Assembly (NCBI GenBank): GCA_020536535.1
Contig: JAHLWZ010000886.1
Coordinates: 1-59,165 of the forward strand
Reading direction: 5' to 3'
Length of the DNA: 59,165 bases
Origin: Pelomyxa schiedti
Taxonomy: Eukaryota > Protista > Evosea
The notes beneath the pieces are model-generated. The model was given only the letters and a program-made list of their open reading frames with translations. It did not search any database and had not been told where the DNA came from. This document shows, piece by piece, positions 2,461-21,489 of the stretch; position 1 is the first letter of the stretch; each line of letters opens with the position of its first letter. The position numbers and the translations under genes are program-made.

Positions 2461-5400
2461 TCAAAGACGAGAGGGCGTAGAGGGAGTGGGGCTTCCTCCT
2501 GGGGGAAGAGCGGGGAGGGTCTGGGACAGGCGGTGCCCGTTGGGGGGCAGGGGGCGGACCGTGGCGGGGCTGGCGGTGACCAGCGGGGGCGGGGGCACCG
2601 GCGTGGGGTTGGCGTTGACTGCTGGGGGAGGCGGGATGGCTGGCGGGAGTATGGCTGGCTGCTGCTGCGGCGGGGGCGGCGGCGGCTGCTGCGGCAGGCC
2701 GCCCGGGGGGCTGACGCCCGGTGCCGTGGATGGCGGTGGGAGTGGGGTGGGGGCGGAGGGCTGGAGGGAGCCGACTTGCCAGCCACTGGGGCGGGCCGAG
2801 GTGGACCGGGCGAGCGGCGGCTTGGTGGTCGGAGTGCCTGGCGTGGGGGCGGTGCTGGTGGCGGGGGTGACGATGGGCGGGGGAATGGCCGTGTTAGGGG
2901 GAGCAATGGCAGTAGAGCTGGCGGGAGGTGGGATAGTGGGGGTAGAGGGAGGGGGGATGCTTGGTGTGGAGGGTGGCGGGATTGTGGCAGGAGTTGGGGG
3001 TGGAGTGGAAGATAGAGGGGGTGGAAGAATCGCTGGCTGAGGTATGGGGGTAACTATTTGTGTAGGTGGTTGAATTGGCGCCGTTGTTGGAGGAGTGGTG
3101 TGTTCCGGCTCCCTTCTAGCTGAAGGGTGCGCAGGTGTGAAAGAGTGTGGGACTGGAGGGGGTGGTGGAGGGGGAGGAGCAGGGGGAGCCATGATCGTTG
3201 AAGCGATATCTGATTGAATAGGAACAGCGGGACGTGCAGACTCGCCTATTTCAATTAACTGAAGGAGGTAAGAACTAATTTACTGCAAGACGTTCAAGAA
3301 ACCTTGAATAGGTCGCCTATCCTACGATCCAAGTCATACATTCGAAACATGAATGGTAAATTCATCCCCAAACTGTTAACTTCGCCTTTCACCTCTTGGA
3401 TAAGCAGCAATGCAGCTTTCCTGTATGGAATAAGTTTACATATCATTGGAAAAGAAGGCCACCTGATCGATTGAGACTTCTCCAATGAAACTTGGTTCGC
3501 GGCAATATTAACATATGGGATGCTCTTTTGCTTGTACGTATCACACAACGGGGACTGAAGGAGTGAACTCATCTAACTATGTTGGTCTTGTGTGAGAAAA
3601 TGAAGACTTGTTACCTCACGTGCAAGCTTACTTAAATAGACAATTTCCGAGATTGCCTCAGATTCTGTAATCATTTAGTTGAATTTATGTGATATTGGAA
3701 AAACCAGCAGTTCTGAGGTACAACTCATCTAACCTCTTTTGGATTCGATCGAAGATTTTTGTGACACGTTTCTTGGGTAAATCCAAATCGGCCTATGATG
3801 GTAAAAAAGGGTCCCCGTCGGACAAACATGCCTCATTGACTGTGATTGGGTCGTTCCATTCGGGTGGCACATCTGGGGTCAATCCTGTACCCACTAAACA
3901 GGAATTAGATCTTGTTTAACCTTCCCAATTCCCCCTTGGTACCCACCATCAGCTTGTCCTTGCTGTTCAAGTTTCCTTATTTTATTTCGAAGTAGCCTAT
4001 TTTCTGCTTCAGCAGCCCTCCTCAATGTAGACTCACGTTCAGCAAAACTGTGCAAGGATTCACAGTAGTCTTCAAGTTGTTTGAAGAATAGTATGCGAGA
4101 TTTCACTGCATTTGCAAGGGGGAGTGTGCCATCATCAACTTCTTCGTCAGCACCAGTGGTCTCAGTGGAAGGTGCTGCTGATGTTGATCCCTCAAGTTTA
4201 AACTTCCGGTCAAAACCCTTCTTCTTGTTGCTTGCCAGCTCGATGAGAAGTTGGCAGTCATACTAAAGGTGCTCTCAATGGAAGAAAATTCCACATGGTG
4301 TGGGGATACCGATGGAAACTTCTTACTGATATGATCAACAATAAGGTCAACACCCTTAGTTACTTGTTGAAGGAGAAAGTTGAGGTCTTCATCTTGGTTT
4401 TCCTCAGGTTCTGCTAAAGGGGCCCCACTATCAGGTAATGGTGATGCGACCTACTTGATTAGAAATCATTTGGCGCAACTCTGATTTACACACTGAAATT
4501 TGGTCCAAAAAGTTTAGTAAAAGAGGAATATTTCTAGCTATGACTTTGTTTATTGTAGAAAGTTGCTCGTTGGAGGATGGATTAGCAAATTCAACACCAT
4601 TCGCAAGTTTTTGTAGAAGTGTGGAGATCTTTTGTCGAATTAGCTGGTTTTGACCAAACGTGTAAATACCATCATGACAGTTTTCATTGATTGTTCATTG
4701 GGCTTTTCTGGATGGTTTTAAGAAAAAAAGAAAAGTTTAGCGAGGTTTCTACCGGGAAGTATCCCGGCTGTATCAGGGGTCAGAACGGCAGGGCACAAGA
4801 ATCTTAAAAACAAAAACCCCCCAACAGCAATTGTTTTAATTTGAGGTGATTTCTTGGCTACTTCCGTATAGACATGATGGAAGATTTGCCGCAATATCCT
4901 GTTGAAAAAAAAAATATTTTTACTTTTGAAAGATGTATCTACCACATACATTGGACAAGCTTCCTTTGAGGCAAAGATTTTGTCGCACAAGTCTTGGAGT
5001 ATCCCAGTCAGCCTAGTCACGCTTGCGTTCAAATCTACACCTTCTGGTGCACTTAGTTGTGTGAGATGTCCACTCAACTTTACTAAATTAGAAGAAATAC
5101 GTGATGGACATGTACCTGTAAGTTGAAGTCTCTTGCAGTCACTTGGGAAAAGAAGGGGCCCAAGCAAAATCTTAGATAATCTCTTCCGTATTTTCTGTAA
5201 TATACATTCATCATCCGTGTGGCAAGTGAGTTGTTTCTAAACAATGTCTCCGCCTTGGCTTTTTTTTTTCCCCCTCAATGTTATAACGAGTGGAGGTTGC
5301 ACACCAGCATACTTGTCTCCTTTATTTCCTCGTTGATAGCCCATTTGATCAAATTGTTTGCCACACCATAGGAGAGATGAATTGTTGCAAGAGCTTCAGA

Positions 5401-5825: not shown

Positions 5826-6539
5826 ATGAGCCAGCCGCAGTTTATTCTGATCTCTACGTCGGCAGGTAAGTGCGTTTTGACACCTTGTAATTATGTCAAA
5901 GTTTGACAGGCAGCTAACATAACCACAAATACCAAACAAAACCCACAAGGCAACATCAAGATCAAGATGTTGCGTGACCAGGCTCCCAAGACGTGTGAGA
6001 CAATCTCGAAGTTGGTGTCGTCGGGGTTGTACAATGGTTGTTGCTTCTACAGAGCCGAACCAGGTTTCGTAGTTCAAGGTACGATCTCCTTTGTGTTTCT
6101 CCATGAGATCTGATCTTGCACTTACACAAAGGGGGTTTGAGGACCCCTGAGGGGACAGTACGTAAAAGCCCTTTTGGCGGGATTCCACTCGAGTACGGGG
6201 CCCTAAATAAGAAAGGCACAGTCACCCTTGCTCGTTGGGAGAAGACTGACTCTGGTGACAGTGAGTTCTTTGTATGTTGCCCATTTCCGCCTTATAACAG
6301 TGCCTACCACCCCAAATGCCAATCTAACGTCCATTTCATCACAACAGATTAACCTGAACAACAACACAAACCTTGACCGCTATGGCACAAGTGGTTGGGC
6401 TCTTGGGTTTGCCGTTTGGGGAATGATTGTTGAAGGCATGGATGTTGTTGAAGCCATTTCAAACCACCCAACAACCACACAAGGTGGGTTAAAAATGTTG
6501 ACCAGACCAGTGGCATTTACCTCTGTATCCCTTGTCTAA
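5826..6539 (+). CDS. Cyclophilin-type peptidyl-prolyl cis-trans isomerase (PpiA/PpiB-like), 4 exons
   Basis: Spliced product: GNIKIKMLRDQAPKT...GLYNGCCFYRAEPGFVVQGG...NKKGTVTLAR...SGDSEFFINL.NN.NLD...GFAVWGMIVEGMDVVEAI. Confidence 0.92.
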
Positions 6540-6611
6540 AAATCAAAAATAAAAAAGCTTCTCGGGTGATAACCCAAAGTTATGCTATTGGCGTAAAAAA
6601 CCACATTTCAA

Positions 6612-9600
6612 TCAAGCTGTAGAAAATTGCCAGAATCCAGTCCCATACCTTTTATTTGTGGTGAGTGAAAAATAACTCTTGGAATAGTAGAAACAATTCG
6701 TCAGCCCAGGGGAACTTTTCTCTCACTTTGGGGCCACAATCCTTTCCAAGTGTGCAAACAATGAGCCCATTCAGGATAACACTGTGATCATTCACCTTGA
6801 TGTTTTGATAGTTGAGCCGTTTTGTGGCATTAGTAGGAATGATTACCTGTTGGCCTCCATCCAAGACTATATTGTACAGTTTATGAACAAATGTGGAAAC
6901 AGGTGTTGCTACAGTGAAGGGATGTACCCATTCGCCTTGAAGGCAAATAGGGTGACCAGGAGTAAGCCCAACTCCACAAACATAAGCCATTGACTGCATG
7001 CAGTCTAGAGTGCGAATAGAGAGCAGGGCAATCCTTCTGGGCCGCATTTGCTCACTCAACACCAAGTCGCCATCACATAAATCCTCCACTTTTCTGTAAG
7101 GGTTACTCGGAATTTTCAGTGTACAATAAGTCGGTACTTGCGACTATAATCACTCATAAGGATATACGCATCTCCAAGAAAGCATGCGGCTCTATTTGGC
7201 CCCTTGGTATGTGTGAAATGGATGACGATGTGAAACAACTATTTGACTTCTGAACCTTAAATGGATCGACTGTAATTTTCACAACTTTGGGGGTTGAATT
7301 TTTCCATAGTAATTTCCGTGCTTGTGATAGAACTGGAAGCGATGAAAACCAGTGTTGGCCCCCAATAATTACACACAGGTTTTCCGCAAATTTGTTTTCT
7401 CACTGCTATGTACAAAGGGCCTCCATAAAATATCATCATCGCATAATGAATAGAATGCTTTACATGTCTGATTGGAATCTGAGCTTATATAATAGGGAAG
7501 CAATAATACGTGGCCAAGTAAGCACAACTCTTCTGCACTCAGATATGACAGTACCAACAACCAGCACTGGTGGGGCATACGAGTAACAGGATTATAGAAA
7601 AGTGAAAATGTGTATCCATCTCCAAGGATTCTGGCCTCGGTTTGGCGCAATACTCCTCCACAAAGGAAAACTGCTTGTCCTCTTGGTACAACTGAGTGAA
7701 ACTAAATTCTATCAAGAAAGCATACGGGATACACAAACTTACCTCCCTTGATACAGGTGCAGCCTCACTTTTCGCTCTGGACCATATTTTTTTAGACAAA
7801 TCTAGGCTTTTACGTTATTAGCTTCTATCTGTATAACCTAGCACTTACACGGAAAATTCGCACGCTTCACTTTCATTAGCTGACCCGACGACAACGAATG
7901 TTGAATCGTCTATGAGGCAACCACGATTGCCTCTCTGAGGTGTGGGGGGTAAACCAAATGATGTGTGGCATGACCAAGTGAATGTGGCTTCGCTGAGGTT
8001 GACAGACCACAGGTCAGAAAACTTGATCCTTTTTTCATTGATGCCACCAAAGACAAACATTTCACCTAGACTTGGGAAACTGTTAGAAAAAGAAGGATTT
8101 GGATTAGGGTTTGCCAGCACGTATCATACCTTGTTACAAATGCAGAGTGGTAATGCCGCCCTGGAGGTGTTACAGAACCTGCATCAACTCTATGCCACTC
8201 GGCCGTCGTAAGATTGAATTCTATGCACCTTTAGATATTTTGCTTTCCTTCCATTTTACCATATAAACGATGAGAAGACATCCCCGGAGAGTGAAATCCA
8301 CCAAAAAGATATAGCTTCCCATTCCAACTATGCAGACTCAGGTGAAATTAAAAAGGTAAGATACATACTGCACTAAGGATGCACCAATTAGGGCCGCTGG
8401 TTCTTCAGGGCCGACGCAAGTATTAAGTCTTTGAAGGCCACAGTCTGGCATTTCTATCAAGAATAGGGATCTCGAAAAAGATACAGATGCTGAAGGAAGA
8501 GTACTGCTCGGAGGTGATGCAGTTGATTCTGAAGCAACAGTTTCTCCCTCTGTTACTACCGTACTAGATTGTGGAATTTCTGAGTCCAAGGGAACTGTTG
8601 AGGATGCGGTTGGGCTAGAGGCTGTATCAGATAAATTCCCGCCATAGAGAAAAATCCTGTTCCCCACCTGACAAGCTGCTGGAAACTGTGAACCGCCAAA
8701 AGATACACCACTGCATGTCAAGGGGATGGGCGGCAGCCATTTTCTTGTAGTTAAATTAAATCTTTGTGCAGTGCGCGCAGGCACCTTGGAGGAGTCACAG
8801 CCTCCAACTATGTATAAAATGTCATGTAGTACTGCAGAAGAATGGCCATAACTAAATTTGAAAACGATAAGAGCAAAGGTATTTGTGTTTCGTATATACC
8901 GACAGCAGGGTTCTGCAACTGAAGGTGGCCCAAATATTGATTCACAACATACTAGGCCAGAGGTGGATGATAACACAGGTGCAGGTAACGAACTAGGAGG
9001 GGGTGGGGTCGAACTTGATCCGAAAAGTAACCGAGAGAAAAATCCTGTTCTATATTAGTATTTTATTAGATGAGAGGCTACTTTCCAGGAGTACTCGGCT
9101 TTTTTTTGGCATCAGGAGAGTAGTTAATAGCTTCAAACATAACGTCAATAAGAGTCTGTTCATTTGTTTTTTTGCTCCAAGGAGAGACTTCTACATAAGC
9201 ATATGCACCAATGTCATCAGCTATCTTTTGAAATGGGGGAAAAAAAACAAAAAAAACGGGATAGTGAGTGCTTCCTCACACATCTGAGCTTTCGTGGATA
9301 TACCTGGACTCCCTCTTTCCAGTAAAAAGAGTCACTCATTGATTCTCGAGGACCTGCGATAGCGACCAAAACTATGGCTACACCAGGGCAGTTGTTCCAT
9401 GCTTCTGGGAACCACTTTTGGACAATCTCATGTTTAGTCAGGCCAAAAAACGAGAAGCCGATTCTGAAGCATAGGAGAAACAAGTCGGTCCCGGGATACG
9501 AGAGAGGTCGGTCCCAGTCCCTGAACTCGTATTCCATGCGGACAATGTCGTGGATCTCGAAATTAAAGTCGTCTCCGTTCGAGGTCTTTTTGCGCAAAGC

Positions 9601-9795
9601 CACAGCCCCGAGTGTGTCAGTCGACCACGTCCCGAAATTCGGTGCCTTCCCGTCCCTCATCAACGTCACAAGTGACGTCTGCGGGTCACTCTTAACCAAA
9701 CAAGGGAAAAAAGGGGGGGAGGAAAGAGAATGCACCTTGCCAGTTTCCCCCGCCCCCAGGATGAACACCTTGTGTGTCTTTGGTGTGAGCCACAT
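6612..9795 (-). CDS. Multidomain protein: atypical Rho-like GTPase + Kelch repeats + F-box + C-terminal Hint (Vint-type) domain
   Basis: Rho: KVFILGAGETGKTSL, DRPLSYPGTDLFLLCF, KWFPE...CPGVAIVLV, IGAYAYVEVS. Kelch: YGHSSAV..DILYIVGG, RIFLYGG, KLYLFGG, MFVFGG..FSDLW. F-box: MPHQCWLLVLSYLSAEELCLLGH.CKAFYSLCDDDILWR. Hint: CFLGDAYILMSDYSRKKVEDLCDGDLV, GLTPGHPI, KLYNIVLD, VILNGLIVCTLG. Key joins (Rho-Kelch, F-box-Hint, within Hint) use phase-consistent GT-AG introns; the Kelch-F-box join was followed less closely. Confidence 0.8.
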
Positions 9796-10082
9796 TCCAA
9801 CGTAGCTCAAGAAATAAGGAAACAGTTAGGATCTTTCGTCTTCGGGAAACCGTTTCATCGAAGAGCAGATCTCTGGGTCTTGAGTGCCAACCTCAAGGGC
9901 TCTGCCCTACATTTCTCCATCTTTTCACCCTGTCTAGTACGTACAGCCGTTCAGGCTTTTTCTTCTATGGACCCCTGCCTGATGAGAATCCAATCCAAGC
10001 AGACGAAATTAAAAAGCCGATGGCAGACAAGCAGCCAGTTTACCGATTTTTGGTGTGGTTCCAACCCCATTTCCATTGTACT

Positions 10083-11117
10083 ATGTTTCCTTTATTAACG
10101 CTCGAAGAAAAGATATCGTTTGGAGTGTTGTTGTGGGCCCTGCTGTCATCTCGTGGCGGCGGTTTTTCCGGGCTTGCTGGTGCCGTTGTGTGTCCTGGCA
10201 CCTATCTAGTTTTGGACGTGAGGTCACTCGCGGCGTTGAGCAACTGCAGTTCGATTACAACTGAGTTGGACATCAACTGTCCGCAATGCACGGAAGAGGT
10301 AACTGAGTGAGTTGCTTGTTTGTGATTCATTGCTTTTATTTCTTTTTTTTTGGGCTATTACTGAGCATGGAAAAACGTAGGATATAATCGAGTACTTGGA
10401 TAACCTGGTCTTTGTTGAGGATATCTATATACATTCTGTTGGCTCATCTAGTGTTACGCTCAGCAACCTGGAAATAGTGAATGACCTTCTTACAGTTGAT
10501 ACTAGTGCTGTTGTGGTGCACTTCCCAAAAATGAACTTTGCCTATAGAATAATCGTGTCAGGAGGCAGGTCACCTTTTTTTTTTCCTCATCTCTCAAAGA
10601 TCTGATACATCATACAGCGCTTTCACTACATTTGACGCCCCCATACTCGGAAACATTGGAGACTACTTAATGCTTCAAAGCACAGCTACTGGTCTCACAC
10701 AATTTAGCGTCCCACAGCTCAAAGTCATTGAGTGTTGCGACTACAGCGGCGTGTGGATTGAAGCCCCAGCACTCACTGTTCTTGACATGCCTGAGCTGGA
10801 GGCGATACGTTGGGACTGGACAATGACTAACAGTGGTGTAGCTGTCATTAACATGCCAAAGCTCAAAATGGTTTATGATTACGTTACCTGGCGAGGGTGT
10901 GCATTCCCGAGTCATTCTCTTTGCCAGGCTTTAGGCTGACCTCCACAGAAATGCCGACTTGATTGACATATCGTCACTGTGGAACCCCCAATTTGCGGTT
11001 CTAAGCACGCTTCACTGCTCTGGCAGCCCAAACCTATGCTGCTCACAACTCACAACGCTTGAGGAGACTGCCTCCATTGAAGGCGGAATTGTGTCCAAGG
11101 ACTGCGCTCCTTGCTGA
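10083..11117 (+). CDS. Secreted receptor L-domain / Ecm33-like beta-solenoid protein
   Basis: Hydrophobic N-terminal segment; C..........L..LSNCSSITTELDI cap; repeated (L/F/M)P.L..(I/V) units (TLSNLEIV, HFPKM, SVPQLKVI, DMPELEAI, NMPKLKMV); ends SGSPNLCC...KDCAPC*. Confidence 0.65.
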
Positions 11118-19414: not shown

Positions 19415-21489
19415 CTACGATTTTGAAGCTGTGCCGGGTGCAGTTCTGTTTCGTTTGGGCTGTGGCTCTGTGGGTGTTTCCGCTTCAGAGTTGCCATGTA
19501 CCTCCTTCTTCACTGACTTGTCTGTTGTGTTGCTTTCCGGCGCTGTGAGGGCTGCTGCTGTTGTTGATGCTGTGGCTGATGCTGATGCTGATGCCGTTGC
19601 CGTTGCCGTTGCTCCTTCTTCTTTGTGGGGCTGCGGTGCAGGTACAATGAGGTGCACGACTTGTGAATCAGGAACTGTGACAGATGCGGTCTCCATTCCG
19701 GAGGTTCCGTGCCCCTCCTGGTCCATCTGTGCAACAGACTTGACCGCATTGAGTGCCGGAGGTGCTGTGCTGAGGGCCGGGATGCTTTCGTCATACAAGT
19801 CGAACCACGGCAGCCCTGCTTCTGTGTATTTCTTGGCTGTTACTTGGCTCTCCGGCATATCGCGGCCGGTGAGATTCCTCCACATCATGCTGTTGGCGAC
19901 GTGGACAACGAACTTCATGCAGGATCCTTGGAACCATTCATGTATACCGAGGGGATCTTTGTAAATCTTCTGCTTCATCTTGCCACCTGCTGCAAACCCC
20001 ATTGCCTTGTATTCATCTGGGTCACCTCCTCCACGCAGCCGCAGTACAAGAAGCAATGTAGAATCGGGGCCAATTTTATAGTCTCCTAGTGCCTTTCCGT
20101 CTTCCAGCTGCTTTCCAGAAAAAATGAGCCTCTGTTCGTCTGGAGAAATTCCCTCATTATCATCAATAATTTCTCTGACTTCTTCAATGGTGCTGCTCGA
20201 CTTCACTGCGACTGCAAATTGTTTTCCAGAGAGGGTTTTAACGACAAGGTCAAATTCTGACGTTGCAGAACAGCTTTAAGTATGTCAAATACAAAAGAAA
20301 AAAGAATGGGAAAGTGCCTGAAAGTGACACGGTTTGTTGCTGGCGGCACAATATCACCAAGTCGTGCAGGACGTTGCCGCTCAAATTCTTGGGATTCGAG
20401 ACACACTAAGTCACCTTCCTGAAGGCCGAGCTCCCTTGGAGTTTTGGTGATGTCCAAGGGAACCCTTGAATCGGCTTCGGGCTTCCCGATGGAAAAGGCC
20501 TCGAAGTCCTTTGACACTCGCGGATACAGTCTGATTTCCAATCCCCCAACTTGTTCCCTTCCTGTGAGCTGACCCTCGACGGTGTATCCTGACCCCAGTG
20601 GCATTGCAACGAACTGCCTGATGAGTCCCCGGCTTACGTGAATCCCGTCCAACCACGGCTGTGGGGGGCACACCATGTAATCCTGCTCTCCCGTTTCAGC
20701 AAGCCCGCCGGTGCCATTCCCACCAGTCACAGCATTGACACCACCGATGCAAACCTTCACTGCTGCCGGTTCCGCCTCTTCGGAGCTGTTGAATGATATC
20801 CACATTGCCTCGCACTGCCTCATTGGCATCACACAGGACGTGCTGGCACCCTCGCTGGTCCAACTGGCCGGGACGTTGTGGCAGGATTCCAGAGGCTCGA
20901 GAGGAAACTGGCCGAGACCAGGAGGGAGAGGGTAGTCCTTGCCATCGTCGGGAATTCTCAGTGTCTTGTTGAAGCTCACAGTCATGATGTCTCCAAATTT
21001 GATCTTGCTCCCGTTGTGAATCTTGGCAGTGCGGCCACCATGCAGCCACCAGTTGAATGAGTGAATTAAACTGACATTGGATTTCAGAACCGCGTGTTCA
21101 CTCACACTCGTAACTTGAGGTGTTGTAGTAGTCGTAGTCGTCGAATTTGTGTTTGTATTCGTAGTTGTCTTTGTAGTTGTACTCGTAGTGGTTGATGCTG
21201 TTACGCTTGTATTTGCATTCGACTCCACAGCATCAGTTCTTACAGAGCCAGTCTCAGTGTCAGATACTCTGAATGTTTTGGTCTCCTCAGTCACTATCCT
21301 TGGCAACCTTTTTTCATTGTACAACAAGTGTGGTGCCTGTGGCATTCTGCGAAAGAGTGTCGTTACAACTTAGGTTGGAGTACGAAAGGGCACTCACGAA
21401 AGTTGCTTCTGGGCCAACGTAATGAATTCATCTACGGTCGTTTCGCGTGTCGTAGCGATCTCGGTCTCCCCAACAACCACCGTTAGCAT
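19415..21489 (-). CDS. Ubiquitin-insert protein, tandem copy A (ubiquitin domain 20027-20254 inside a conserved uncharacterised domain)
   Basis: [26 protein letters not shown]...[15 protein letters not shown]...[21 protein letters not shown]; then Ub [11 protein letters not shown]...[14 protein letters not shown]...LVLRLRGG; then [17 protein letters not shown]...[14 protein letters not shown] intron at 20274-20317. Confidence 0.85.

Follow-up and report, generated by a model that had tools for sequence, protein, structure and literature searches.

Pelo_13499 Is Very Probably a Four-Domain Gene Encoding a Candidate Self-Cutting Ubiquitin Ligase Receptor

Within the analysed window, a stretch of 59,165 nt from the anaerobic amoeba Pelomyxa schiedti, the gene Pelo_13499 very probably unites four domains in a single product, in the order degenerate Rac-like domain, Kelch propeller with six blades, F-box, and Hint domain of the Vint type. 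In our preferred reading, to which we give a probability of roughly 55%, this product is the 90-kDa cytosolic precursor of an SCF (Skp1-Cullin1-F-box) receptor, which would cleave its own chain at Ala672|Cys673 once a nucleophile becomes available.

The exon chain, deduced from the public model and from paralogs, comprises 16 exons on the minus strand (9795-6612; all coordinates below refer to this strand unless stated otherwise) and encodes 815 aa, with the start ATG at 9795 and a stop codon ending at 6612. Exon 1 (9736-9795) carries the start ATG and the P-loop GAGETGK|T and was placed by sequence, by a paralog intron, and by alignment with the G1 motif of intact Rac paralogs. An exon search yielded the public protein KAH3745091.1 (“hypothetical protein Pelo_13499,” 789 aa) with 100% identity to the Vint exon. 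This entry starts at Met27 and equals our 815-aa model from there on; it lacks exon 1 with the P-loop as well as the first six codons of exon 2. We retained exon 1 because the paralog P0002 is likewise interrupted by a phase-0 intron at this GK|S/T site. The 789-aa public protein, here termed P0001, is the sequence to which the Pfam scores for Kelch, F-box, and Vint refer, and single exons or P0001, not the joined 815-aa model, served as queries in the homology searches. For intron 7, the acceptor at 8080 was dropped in favour of 8071 on paralog and public-model evidence, without RNA confirmation. The predicted protein ends with FSTA and has no C-terminal CAAX box. An assembly chimera is unlikely, since DNA run X4 covers the stretch, since one DNA contig (6200-9238) includes the junction between the Rac-like and the Kelch region, and since paralogs show the same domain order.

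Three other loci on the contig deserve mention. The 3' part of a cyclophilin gene (6228-6539, plus strand; PF00160, 24.5 bits) lies convergent with Pelo_13499; at 6571-6580, RNA contigs from both genes have about 10 nt in common. A RasGAP-domain exon (4718-5167, minus strand; PF00616, 39.4 bits) is situated about 1.5 kb downstream on the strand of Pelo_13499 and is probably unrelated to the fusion. At 19415-20206 (minus strand), a ubiquitin domain ending in LRLRGG is fused to a longer C-terminal region.

The C-Terminal Vint Domain Keeps the Residues for a Proposed Cleavage Before Cys673

The original prediction described a Hint domain of Vint-like character that follows the F-box via a linker ending in GPNRAA and begins with CFLGD. 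This was borne out: F-box, linker, and Hint domain lie in one open spliced frame, and the two linker introns (7376-7333 and 7255-7203) are confirmed by RNA. The linker (7185-7413, 44 aa, defined by alignment) contains the family motif LWKNxTP, and its last residue, Ala672, is residue -1 of the Hint domain. In the full-length predicted model, linker and C-terminal tail have a pLDDT below 50. The Vint domain itself (6615-7184, 143 aa), which was delimited by PF14623, by the structure model, and by RNA-confirmed introns, scores 62.5 bits with PF14623 (cut-off 27), and its predicted model reaches a pLDDT of 86. The best sequence-profile match is the Tetrahymena Vint structure 8R2C (E 4e-23), which is also the best structural match (Foldseek E 3.7e-9; Z 15.7; rmsd 2.4 over 129 residues) and ranks first in both Foldseek and VIA-align, the next Z being 12.9. 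BIL domains, inteins, and Hedgehog follow after it.

All expected motifs were found in this frame, namely Cys1 (Cys673, codon 7184-7182), the block-B TxxH motif LTPGHP (6966-6949), the block-F motif YNIVLD (6876-6859), NGLIVCTLG as part of a segment continuing as VCTLGKDCG (6759-6733), and YGT within YGTGFW (6647-6630). An alignment of 22 Vint domains with a mean column identity of 34% shows no variation at Cys1, Phe2, and the block-B Thr, His, and Pro, and Cys1 and TxxH are retained in the paralog loci. Block F has Asn in Pelo_13499 and Asp in some paralogs; in Hedgehog, the block-F Asp activates cholesterol. The structural alignment further shows that inteins end at model residue 120 (Thr113 of the Vint domain, the Thr of VCTL), where the intein positions His-Asn|+1 are occupied by Cys-Thr|Leu. 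The terminal His-Asn is thus missing, as originally noted, and because the +1 nucleophile is absent as well, neither splicing nor C-terminal cleavage is expected. The segment after the Hint core (TLGKDCG...YGTG(F/Y)W) aligns with 8R2C beyond the core, is only about 30 residues long, and is nearly invariant in the F-box-associated Vint subfamily. Beyond Cys1 the domain has two conserved cysteines (in VCTLG and KDCG), and residue -1 varies among family members (A, G, E, S, V, Pro).

Judged by these retained residues, Pelo_13499 probably undergoes Cys1-dependent cleavage. It could also be that the Vint domain does not cleave at all and serves as a ligand-, metal-, or redox-binding module, for instance with Cys1 held by Cys112/Cys118, so that the full-length protein would be the working form. 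The two additional conserved cysteines would suit such a role, as would the unconstrained residue -1, which includes Pro and Val. We consider this unlikely, since the invariance of Cys1, Thr, and His in 22 of 22 Vints fits selection on chemistry better than selection on binding alone. Less probable still is a protein ligation in which a lysine of a Kelch-bound substrate, of a partner, or of a ubiquitin-like protein attacks the thioester and yields an isopeptide-linked adaptor without ATP. Such a reaction has a precedent in Tetrahymena, where BIL2 makes isopeptide links and joins a ubiquitin-like domain to a Ras GTPase (PMC8616854). After 8R2C, the Vint model has one of its best structural matches in BIL2, and the Vint domain comes shortly after the F-box, a position where substrate-binding domains often lie. 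However, BIL2 retains the terminal Asn, mutated in its structures (N143A), that the Vint domain of Pelo_13499 lacks, the latter is much nearer to 8R2C than to BIL2, and no ubiquitin-like domain flanks it.

RNA and Intron Evidence for the Domain Order

The RNA evidence consists of assembled contigs from three single-cell libraries (one sample, one study). In these contigs the last eight introns of Pelo_13499 (8-15) are spliced out, all as GT-AG introns on the minus strand, and the resulting joints are absent from the DNA run. Contig no. 5 of X2 (1049 nt) covers 6571-7960 in spliced form and takes in the last Kelch blades, the F-box, the linker, and the Vint domain up to its end. F-box and Vint are thus part of one spliced RNA, because this single contig spans both. 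At window position 7021, inside the Vint exon, two of the three libraries show G>T relative to the DNA, which reflects an allele or strain difference. The RNA contigs of Pelo_13499 stop at 8013, 7960, and 7549, the region 8014-10200 is without any RNA contig, and the pattern fits a 3' bias at low depth. Exon 1 and the remaining Rho exons were accordingly placed from sequence and paralogs. Of the single transcript postulated at the outset, the part from Kelch through F-box to Vint is therefore seen on one spliced contig, whereas the Rho exons remain uncovered.

Only two joins between the Rho and Kelch regions are free of stop codons, one through an intron at 9081-9050 (32 nt, phase 2) and one through an intron at 9094-9045 (50 nt, phase 1). 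The former had been proposed originally and is probably wrong: the public model uses 9094-9045, and the paralogs point to the same site, P0002 with a 53-nt phase-1 intron at KP|GLF and L041 and L050 with possible phase-1 introns of 50 and 52 nt at KP|GFF, all of them sharing the position KP|(G/R)FF with 9094-9045. Moreover, 66 other introns, taken from the public models of five genes, have a median length of 46 nt and a minimum of 39 nt. A branch-point-like TACTAAT lies about 10 nt upstream of the 9094-9045 acceptor. The fusion of the Rho-like to the Kelch region as such stands, then, most likely by way of 9094-9045, with the same domain order and intron in the paralogs. We infer this join from the public model and from paralog intron positions, not from RNA.

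In this context, it might be that a separate Rho gene ends at the TAG at 9081-9079 and that what is expressed is a shorter protein, either Kelch-F-box-Vint or F-box-Vint. Such a reading would accommodate the ends of the RNA contigs and the in-frame TAG that follows PGK if the junction intron is retained. It would also agree with the loose end of the X2 contig at 7960, whose letters resemble a template-switch oligo. We regard it as very improbable: the three libraries show no sign of a lone Rho transcript either, the Kelch frame has no start Met until well inside the propeller, the paralogs repeat both domain order and phase-1 intron, a complete Rho-Kelch-BTB transcript exists in Pyxidicula, and the 3' bias accounts for the RNA cover.

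The N-Terminal Modules Suggest a Pseudo-GTPase and a Cullin Ligase Receptor

The profile checks favoured Kelch, F-box, and Vint, which all pass the Pfam thresholds, whereas the Ras score of the Rho part (17.7 bits) stays under the cut-off of 21.6. The Rho-like exon named in the original prediction is recognizable by its match to human Rac1 (E about 1e-9), yet by its motifs it is a pseudo-GTPase. The domain starts in exon 1 and continues in exons 2 and 3 (9678-9304 and 9224-9095), which were assigned by the Rac1 match and motif alignment. It keeps the G1 P-loop GxxxxGK[ST] as GAGETGKT across exons 1 and 2, of which exon 1 is without RNA cover, and has SPW as G5. The G3 motif DxxG reads DIVR instead of DTAG (9549-9538), and the G4 motif [NT]KxD has become VAIA with loss of its Lys and Asp (about 9366-9349). 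Because G3 and G4 are lost, the domain is unlikely to act as a GTP switch. Both motifs are intact in the paralogs P0072 and P0038, and P0072 has a fully intact Rac domain (Pfam Ras, 120 bits).

Directly behind the GTPase-like part follows a basic/amphipathic segment, KKKP|RFFSRLLFG (9019-9044 for the part behind the junction intron), which was recognized by paralog alignment and hydrophobic moment. It is kept in paralogs as (G/R)(F/L/W)F(S/A)xL, and the RFFSRLLF-type stretch has a hydrophobic moment of 0.70, among the top eight nine-residue windows. The segment is a possible membrane anchor and, being conserved, a competitor to Hint chemistry as the feature that sets localization, which the original prediction had ascribed to the Hint domain.

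The Kelch beta-propeller (7600-8937, exons 4-10) was assigned by Pfam Kelch families (Kelch_1, 78.1 bits) and by structure-model matches; it contains a Ser/Thr-rich insert (8631-8476), and RNA covers it only at 8013 and below. Its model matches the propellers of LZTR1, KLHDC2/3/10, and FBXO42. The closest solved propellers are those of KLHDC3, LZTR1, KLHDC2, and FBXO42, all of them cullin-ligase receptors, with an identity to KLHDC propellers of 15-23%. This likeness indicates the class of the Pelo_13499 propeller and not its ligand. The F-box (7414-7581, split by the RNA-confirmed intron 7509-7468) scores 40.2 bits with PF12937 (cut-off 24.3) and 31.2 bits with PF00646 (cut-off 20.5). By analogy with its family it is likely to bind Skp1, for which the genome has at least five loci. 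Least probable of the readings considered is C-degron mimicry, in which the cleaved C-terminus would bind its own or a paralog's propeller: in KLHDCX proteins, which recognize a C-terminal Gly, the protein's own C-terminus is inhibitory (PMC11568203), KLHDC3 and KLHDC2 are among the nearest propellers, and Gly stands at residue -1 in 6 of about 14 family members, but the N-terminal piece of Pelo_13499 ends in Ala and others end in Glu, Ser, or Val, the identity to KLHDC propellers is low, and Gly at -1 is common in ordinary VWA-Vint proteins too.

F-Box-Vint Proteins With Exchangeable N-Terminal Modules

The P. schiedti genome gave 47 Vint matches, and an eight-paralog profile placed Kelch and Vint pieces on the same strand within a few kilobases on at least 18 contigs, including that of Pelo_13499. 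Twenty loci were read. Eight of them show a colinear Rho-Kelch-F-box-Vint order with shared intron positions, in one the order is Rho-F-box-Vint, and seven are of the ordinary VWA-Vint kind, as represented in this genome by L031-L033 and L035-L038. In all, nine loci checked carry the four domains in this sequence. Intron positions are common to Pelo_13499, P0002, and P0005, and the three Vint introns are shared with the WWE protein P0008 as well.

Full-length homolog searches, limited by a length window and a word index, found the four-domain form nowhere outside P. schiedti. In P. schiedti and Mastigella eilhardi, WWE-Vint proteins have in front of the Vint domain an F-box-like motif that is interrupted and weak (below the Pfam cut-off, E 7.5e-5 to 5e-3), and the combination also occurs in two unidentified public samples, SRR30280145 and ERR13493907. 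The set comprises P0003, P0004/L051, P0006/L052, P0008/L039, and P0013. WWE domains often bind ADP-ribose. The Vints of these proteins share TLGKDCG and YGTG(F/Y)W with the Pelo_13499 subfamily. Since F-box-like motif and Vint occur together with WWE in Mastigella and the two samples, F-box-Vint looks like the older core, and what is conserved more widely, by sequence, is an F-box(-like) motif joined to Vint, in front of which the N-terminal modules can be exchanged.

A tree of 34 Vint domains places the degenerate-Rho group (98/92) among F-box-associated Vints and away from VWA-Vints; the Vint of the two intact-Rac proteins is of another kind and has a long branch. A single group of all Rho-Kelch-F-box Vints was weakly rejected (p-AU 0.038, in a test chosen after the tree and affected by the long branch). 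This hints at two recruitments of Vint into Rho-Kelch-F-box proteins. Related fusions without Vint are a complete Rho-Kelch-BTB transcript of Pyxidicula operculata (P0039) and a Kelch-F-box-Ras protein from a metagenome (P0043). P0040 of Willaertia magna is a small GTPase-Kelch fusion without Vint, in which the F-box is only a weak local match.

A second Vint family of P. schiedti (P0007, P0009, P0011, P0014, P0015, P0017, P0019, and P0022; e.g., L049) has an unannotated upstream region with an LCGxHPR motif, followed by AFGNF and EAGN motifs. Residue -1 is mostly Lys in this family, and the members scanned had no Pfam matches other than Vint.

Proposed Mechanism and Comparison With Known Systems

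According to the preferred reading of a self-cutting SCF receptor precursor, and going by what is known of the families, the F-box would dock on Skp1, the Kelch propeller would bind substrates, and the pseudo-Rac domain with the amphipathic segment would act as a binding or membrane-targeting module. In Hint chemistry, a thioester arises between Cys1 and the residue before it (PMC8616854). Cys673 would correspondingly attack the Ala672-Cys673 peptide bond in an N-S acyl shift. Because the C-terminal Asn and the +1 nucleophile are absent, this thioester could be resolved only from outside, be it by water, a thiol, a small molecule, or another protein. Cleavage may wait for a nucleophile or ligand that is admitted by the post-core segment; this segment lies in the piece released, which suggests that it controls or supplies the resolution step. 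The products would be a 16-kDa Vint fragment and a 74-kDa pseudo-Rac-Kelch-F-box adaptor whose C-terminus is free or bears an adduct, and the cut would switch activity, place, or lifetime of the adaptor. No fixed new C-terminus would be made across the family, because residue -1 varies. If cleavage takes place, a small-molecule adduct rather than plain hydrolysis or thiolysis has slightly less than an even chance. Processing inside the cell has been proposed for Vint proteins before (Burglin, 2008, PMC2362128). A broader idea, which we put forward tentatively and hold to be rather doubtful, is that F-box-Vint proteins are protist ubiquitin-ligase adaptors that attach themselves, without ATP and via the Hint thioester, to a metabolite, a lipid, or a target protein, while place or partner would be chosen by an exchangeable N-terminal module, be it pseudo-Rac-Kelch, intact Rac-Kelch, or WWE.

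For the natural nucleophile and purpose of Vint domains, we found no account in the literature searched, in which Burglin (2008) was the one paper on Vint. F-box-Vint paralogs with catalytic residues kept would be small soluble test proteins for Vint function inside cells, with cleavage, adduct mass, and Skp1 binding as the read-out. Transfer of an adduct would amount to a new route by which a ubiquitin ligase is matured or targeted, and to a second natural ligation of the Hedgehog type; plain hydrolysis would still make a conditional switch on an SCF adaptor. The reach is limited in that the full four-domain form is so far known only from P. schiedti. We found no published description of F-box-Vint or of the four-domain architecture, in agreement with the original remark that no description was known, and an account in a closed journal is possible.

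By sequence, Pelo_13499 belongs to the Vint domain family and to the F-box proteins. With VWA-Vwaint-Vint proteins it shares the C-terminal Vint Hint domain (PF14623), motifs A and B, and the lack of splicing residues, and as in these proteins no signal peptide was seen. Membership in that gene family was rejected, since P0001 has no VWA or Vwaint match and has F-box and Kelch instead. Several canonical Vints (8R2C, P0032, L031, L032) read TLGH, whereas Pelo_13499 reads TLGKDCG and has the YGTG(F/Y)W tail. Burglin (2008, PMC2362128) found Vints only together with VWA, four of them with a U-box, and these U-box-VWA-Vint proteins are a precedent for a Vint linked to ubiquitin ligases.

RhoBTB proteins combine an atypical Rho domain with a cullin adaptor. 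The original comparison with them holds as an analogy; as to membership, no BTB domain was matched by Pfam on P0001, and RhoBTB works through BTB/Cul3 and not, as predicted for Pelo_13499, through F-box/Cul1. LZTR1, a RAS-binding protein, is likewise a Cul3 adaptor with BTB, whereas FBXO42 and the plant F-box/Kelch proteins belong to Cul1; none of them has a Hint domain. The propellers of LZTR1 and FBXO42 resemble that of Pelo_13499, in which Kelch precedes the F-box, unlike in FBXO42 and the plant F-box/Kelch proteins.

Intein or BIL membership was rejected because of Cys-Thr|Leu in place of His-Asn|+1 and the missing C-extein. BUBL/BIL2 of Tetrahymena (PMC8616854; PDB 6TMM, 6Y75; Z 12.4) is, like Pelo_13499, a eukaryotic Hint tied to the ubiquitin system, but it has a terminal Asn and flanking ubiquitin-like domains where Pelo_13499 has an F-box neighbour and no C-extein. 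Hedgehog/Hog proteins share the Hint fold (1AT0, Z 11.9), Cys1 and TxxH, the C-terminal position, and the absence of a terminal Asn. Pelo_13499 differs from them in that no secretion signal was seen, in its block-F Asn, and in its extension of about 30 aa, and it lacks the Hog motifs J/K/L, as described for Vints (PMC2362128). Hog membership was rejected, since P0001 gave no PF01079 match at E 0.001 and only about 30 aa follow the core. By analogy, Pelo_13499 may work like Hedgehog, with an adduct, or like BIL2, with an isopeptide link.
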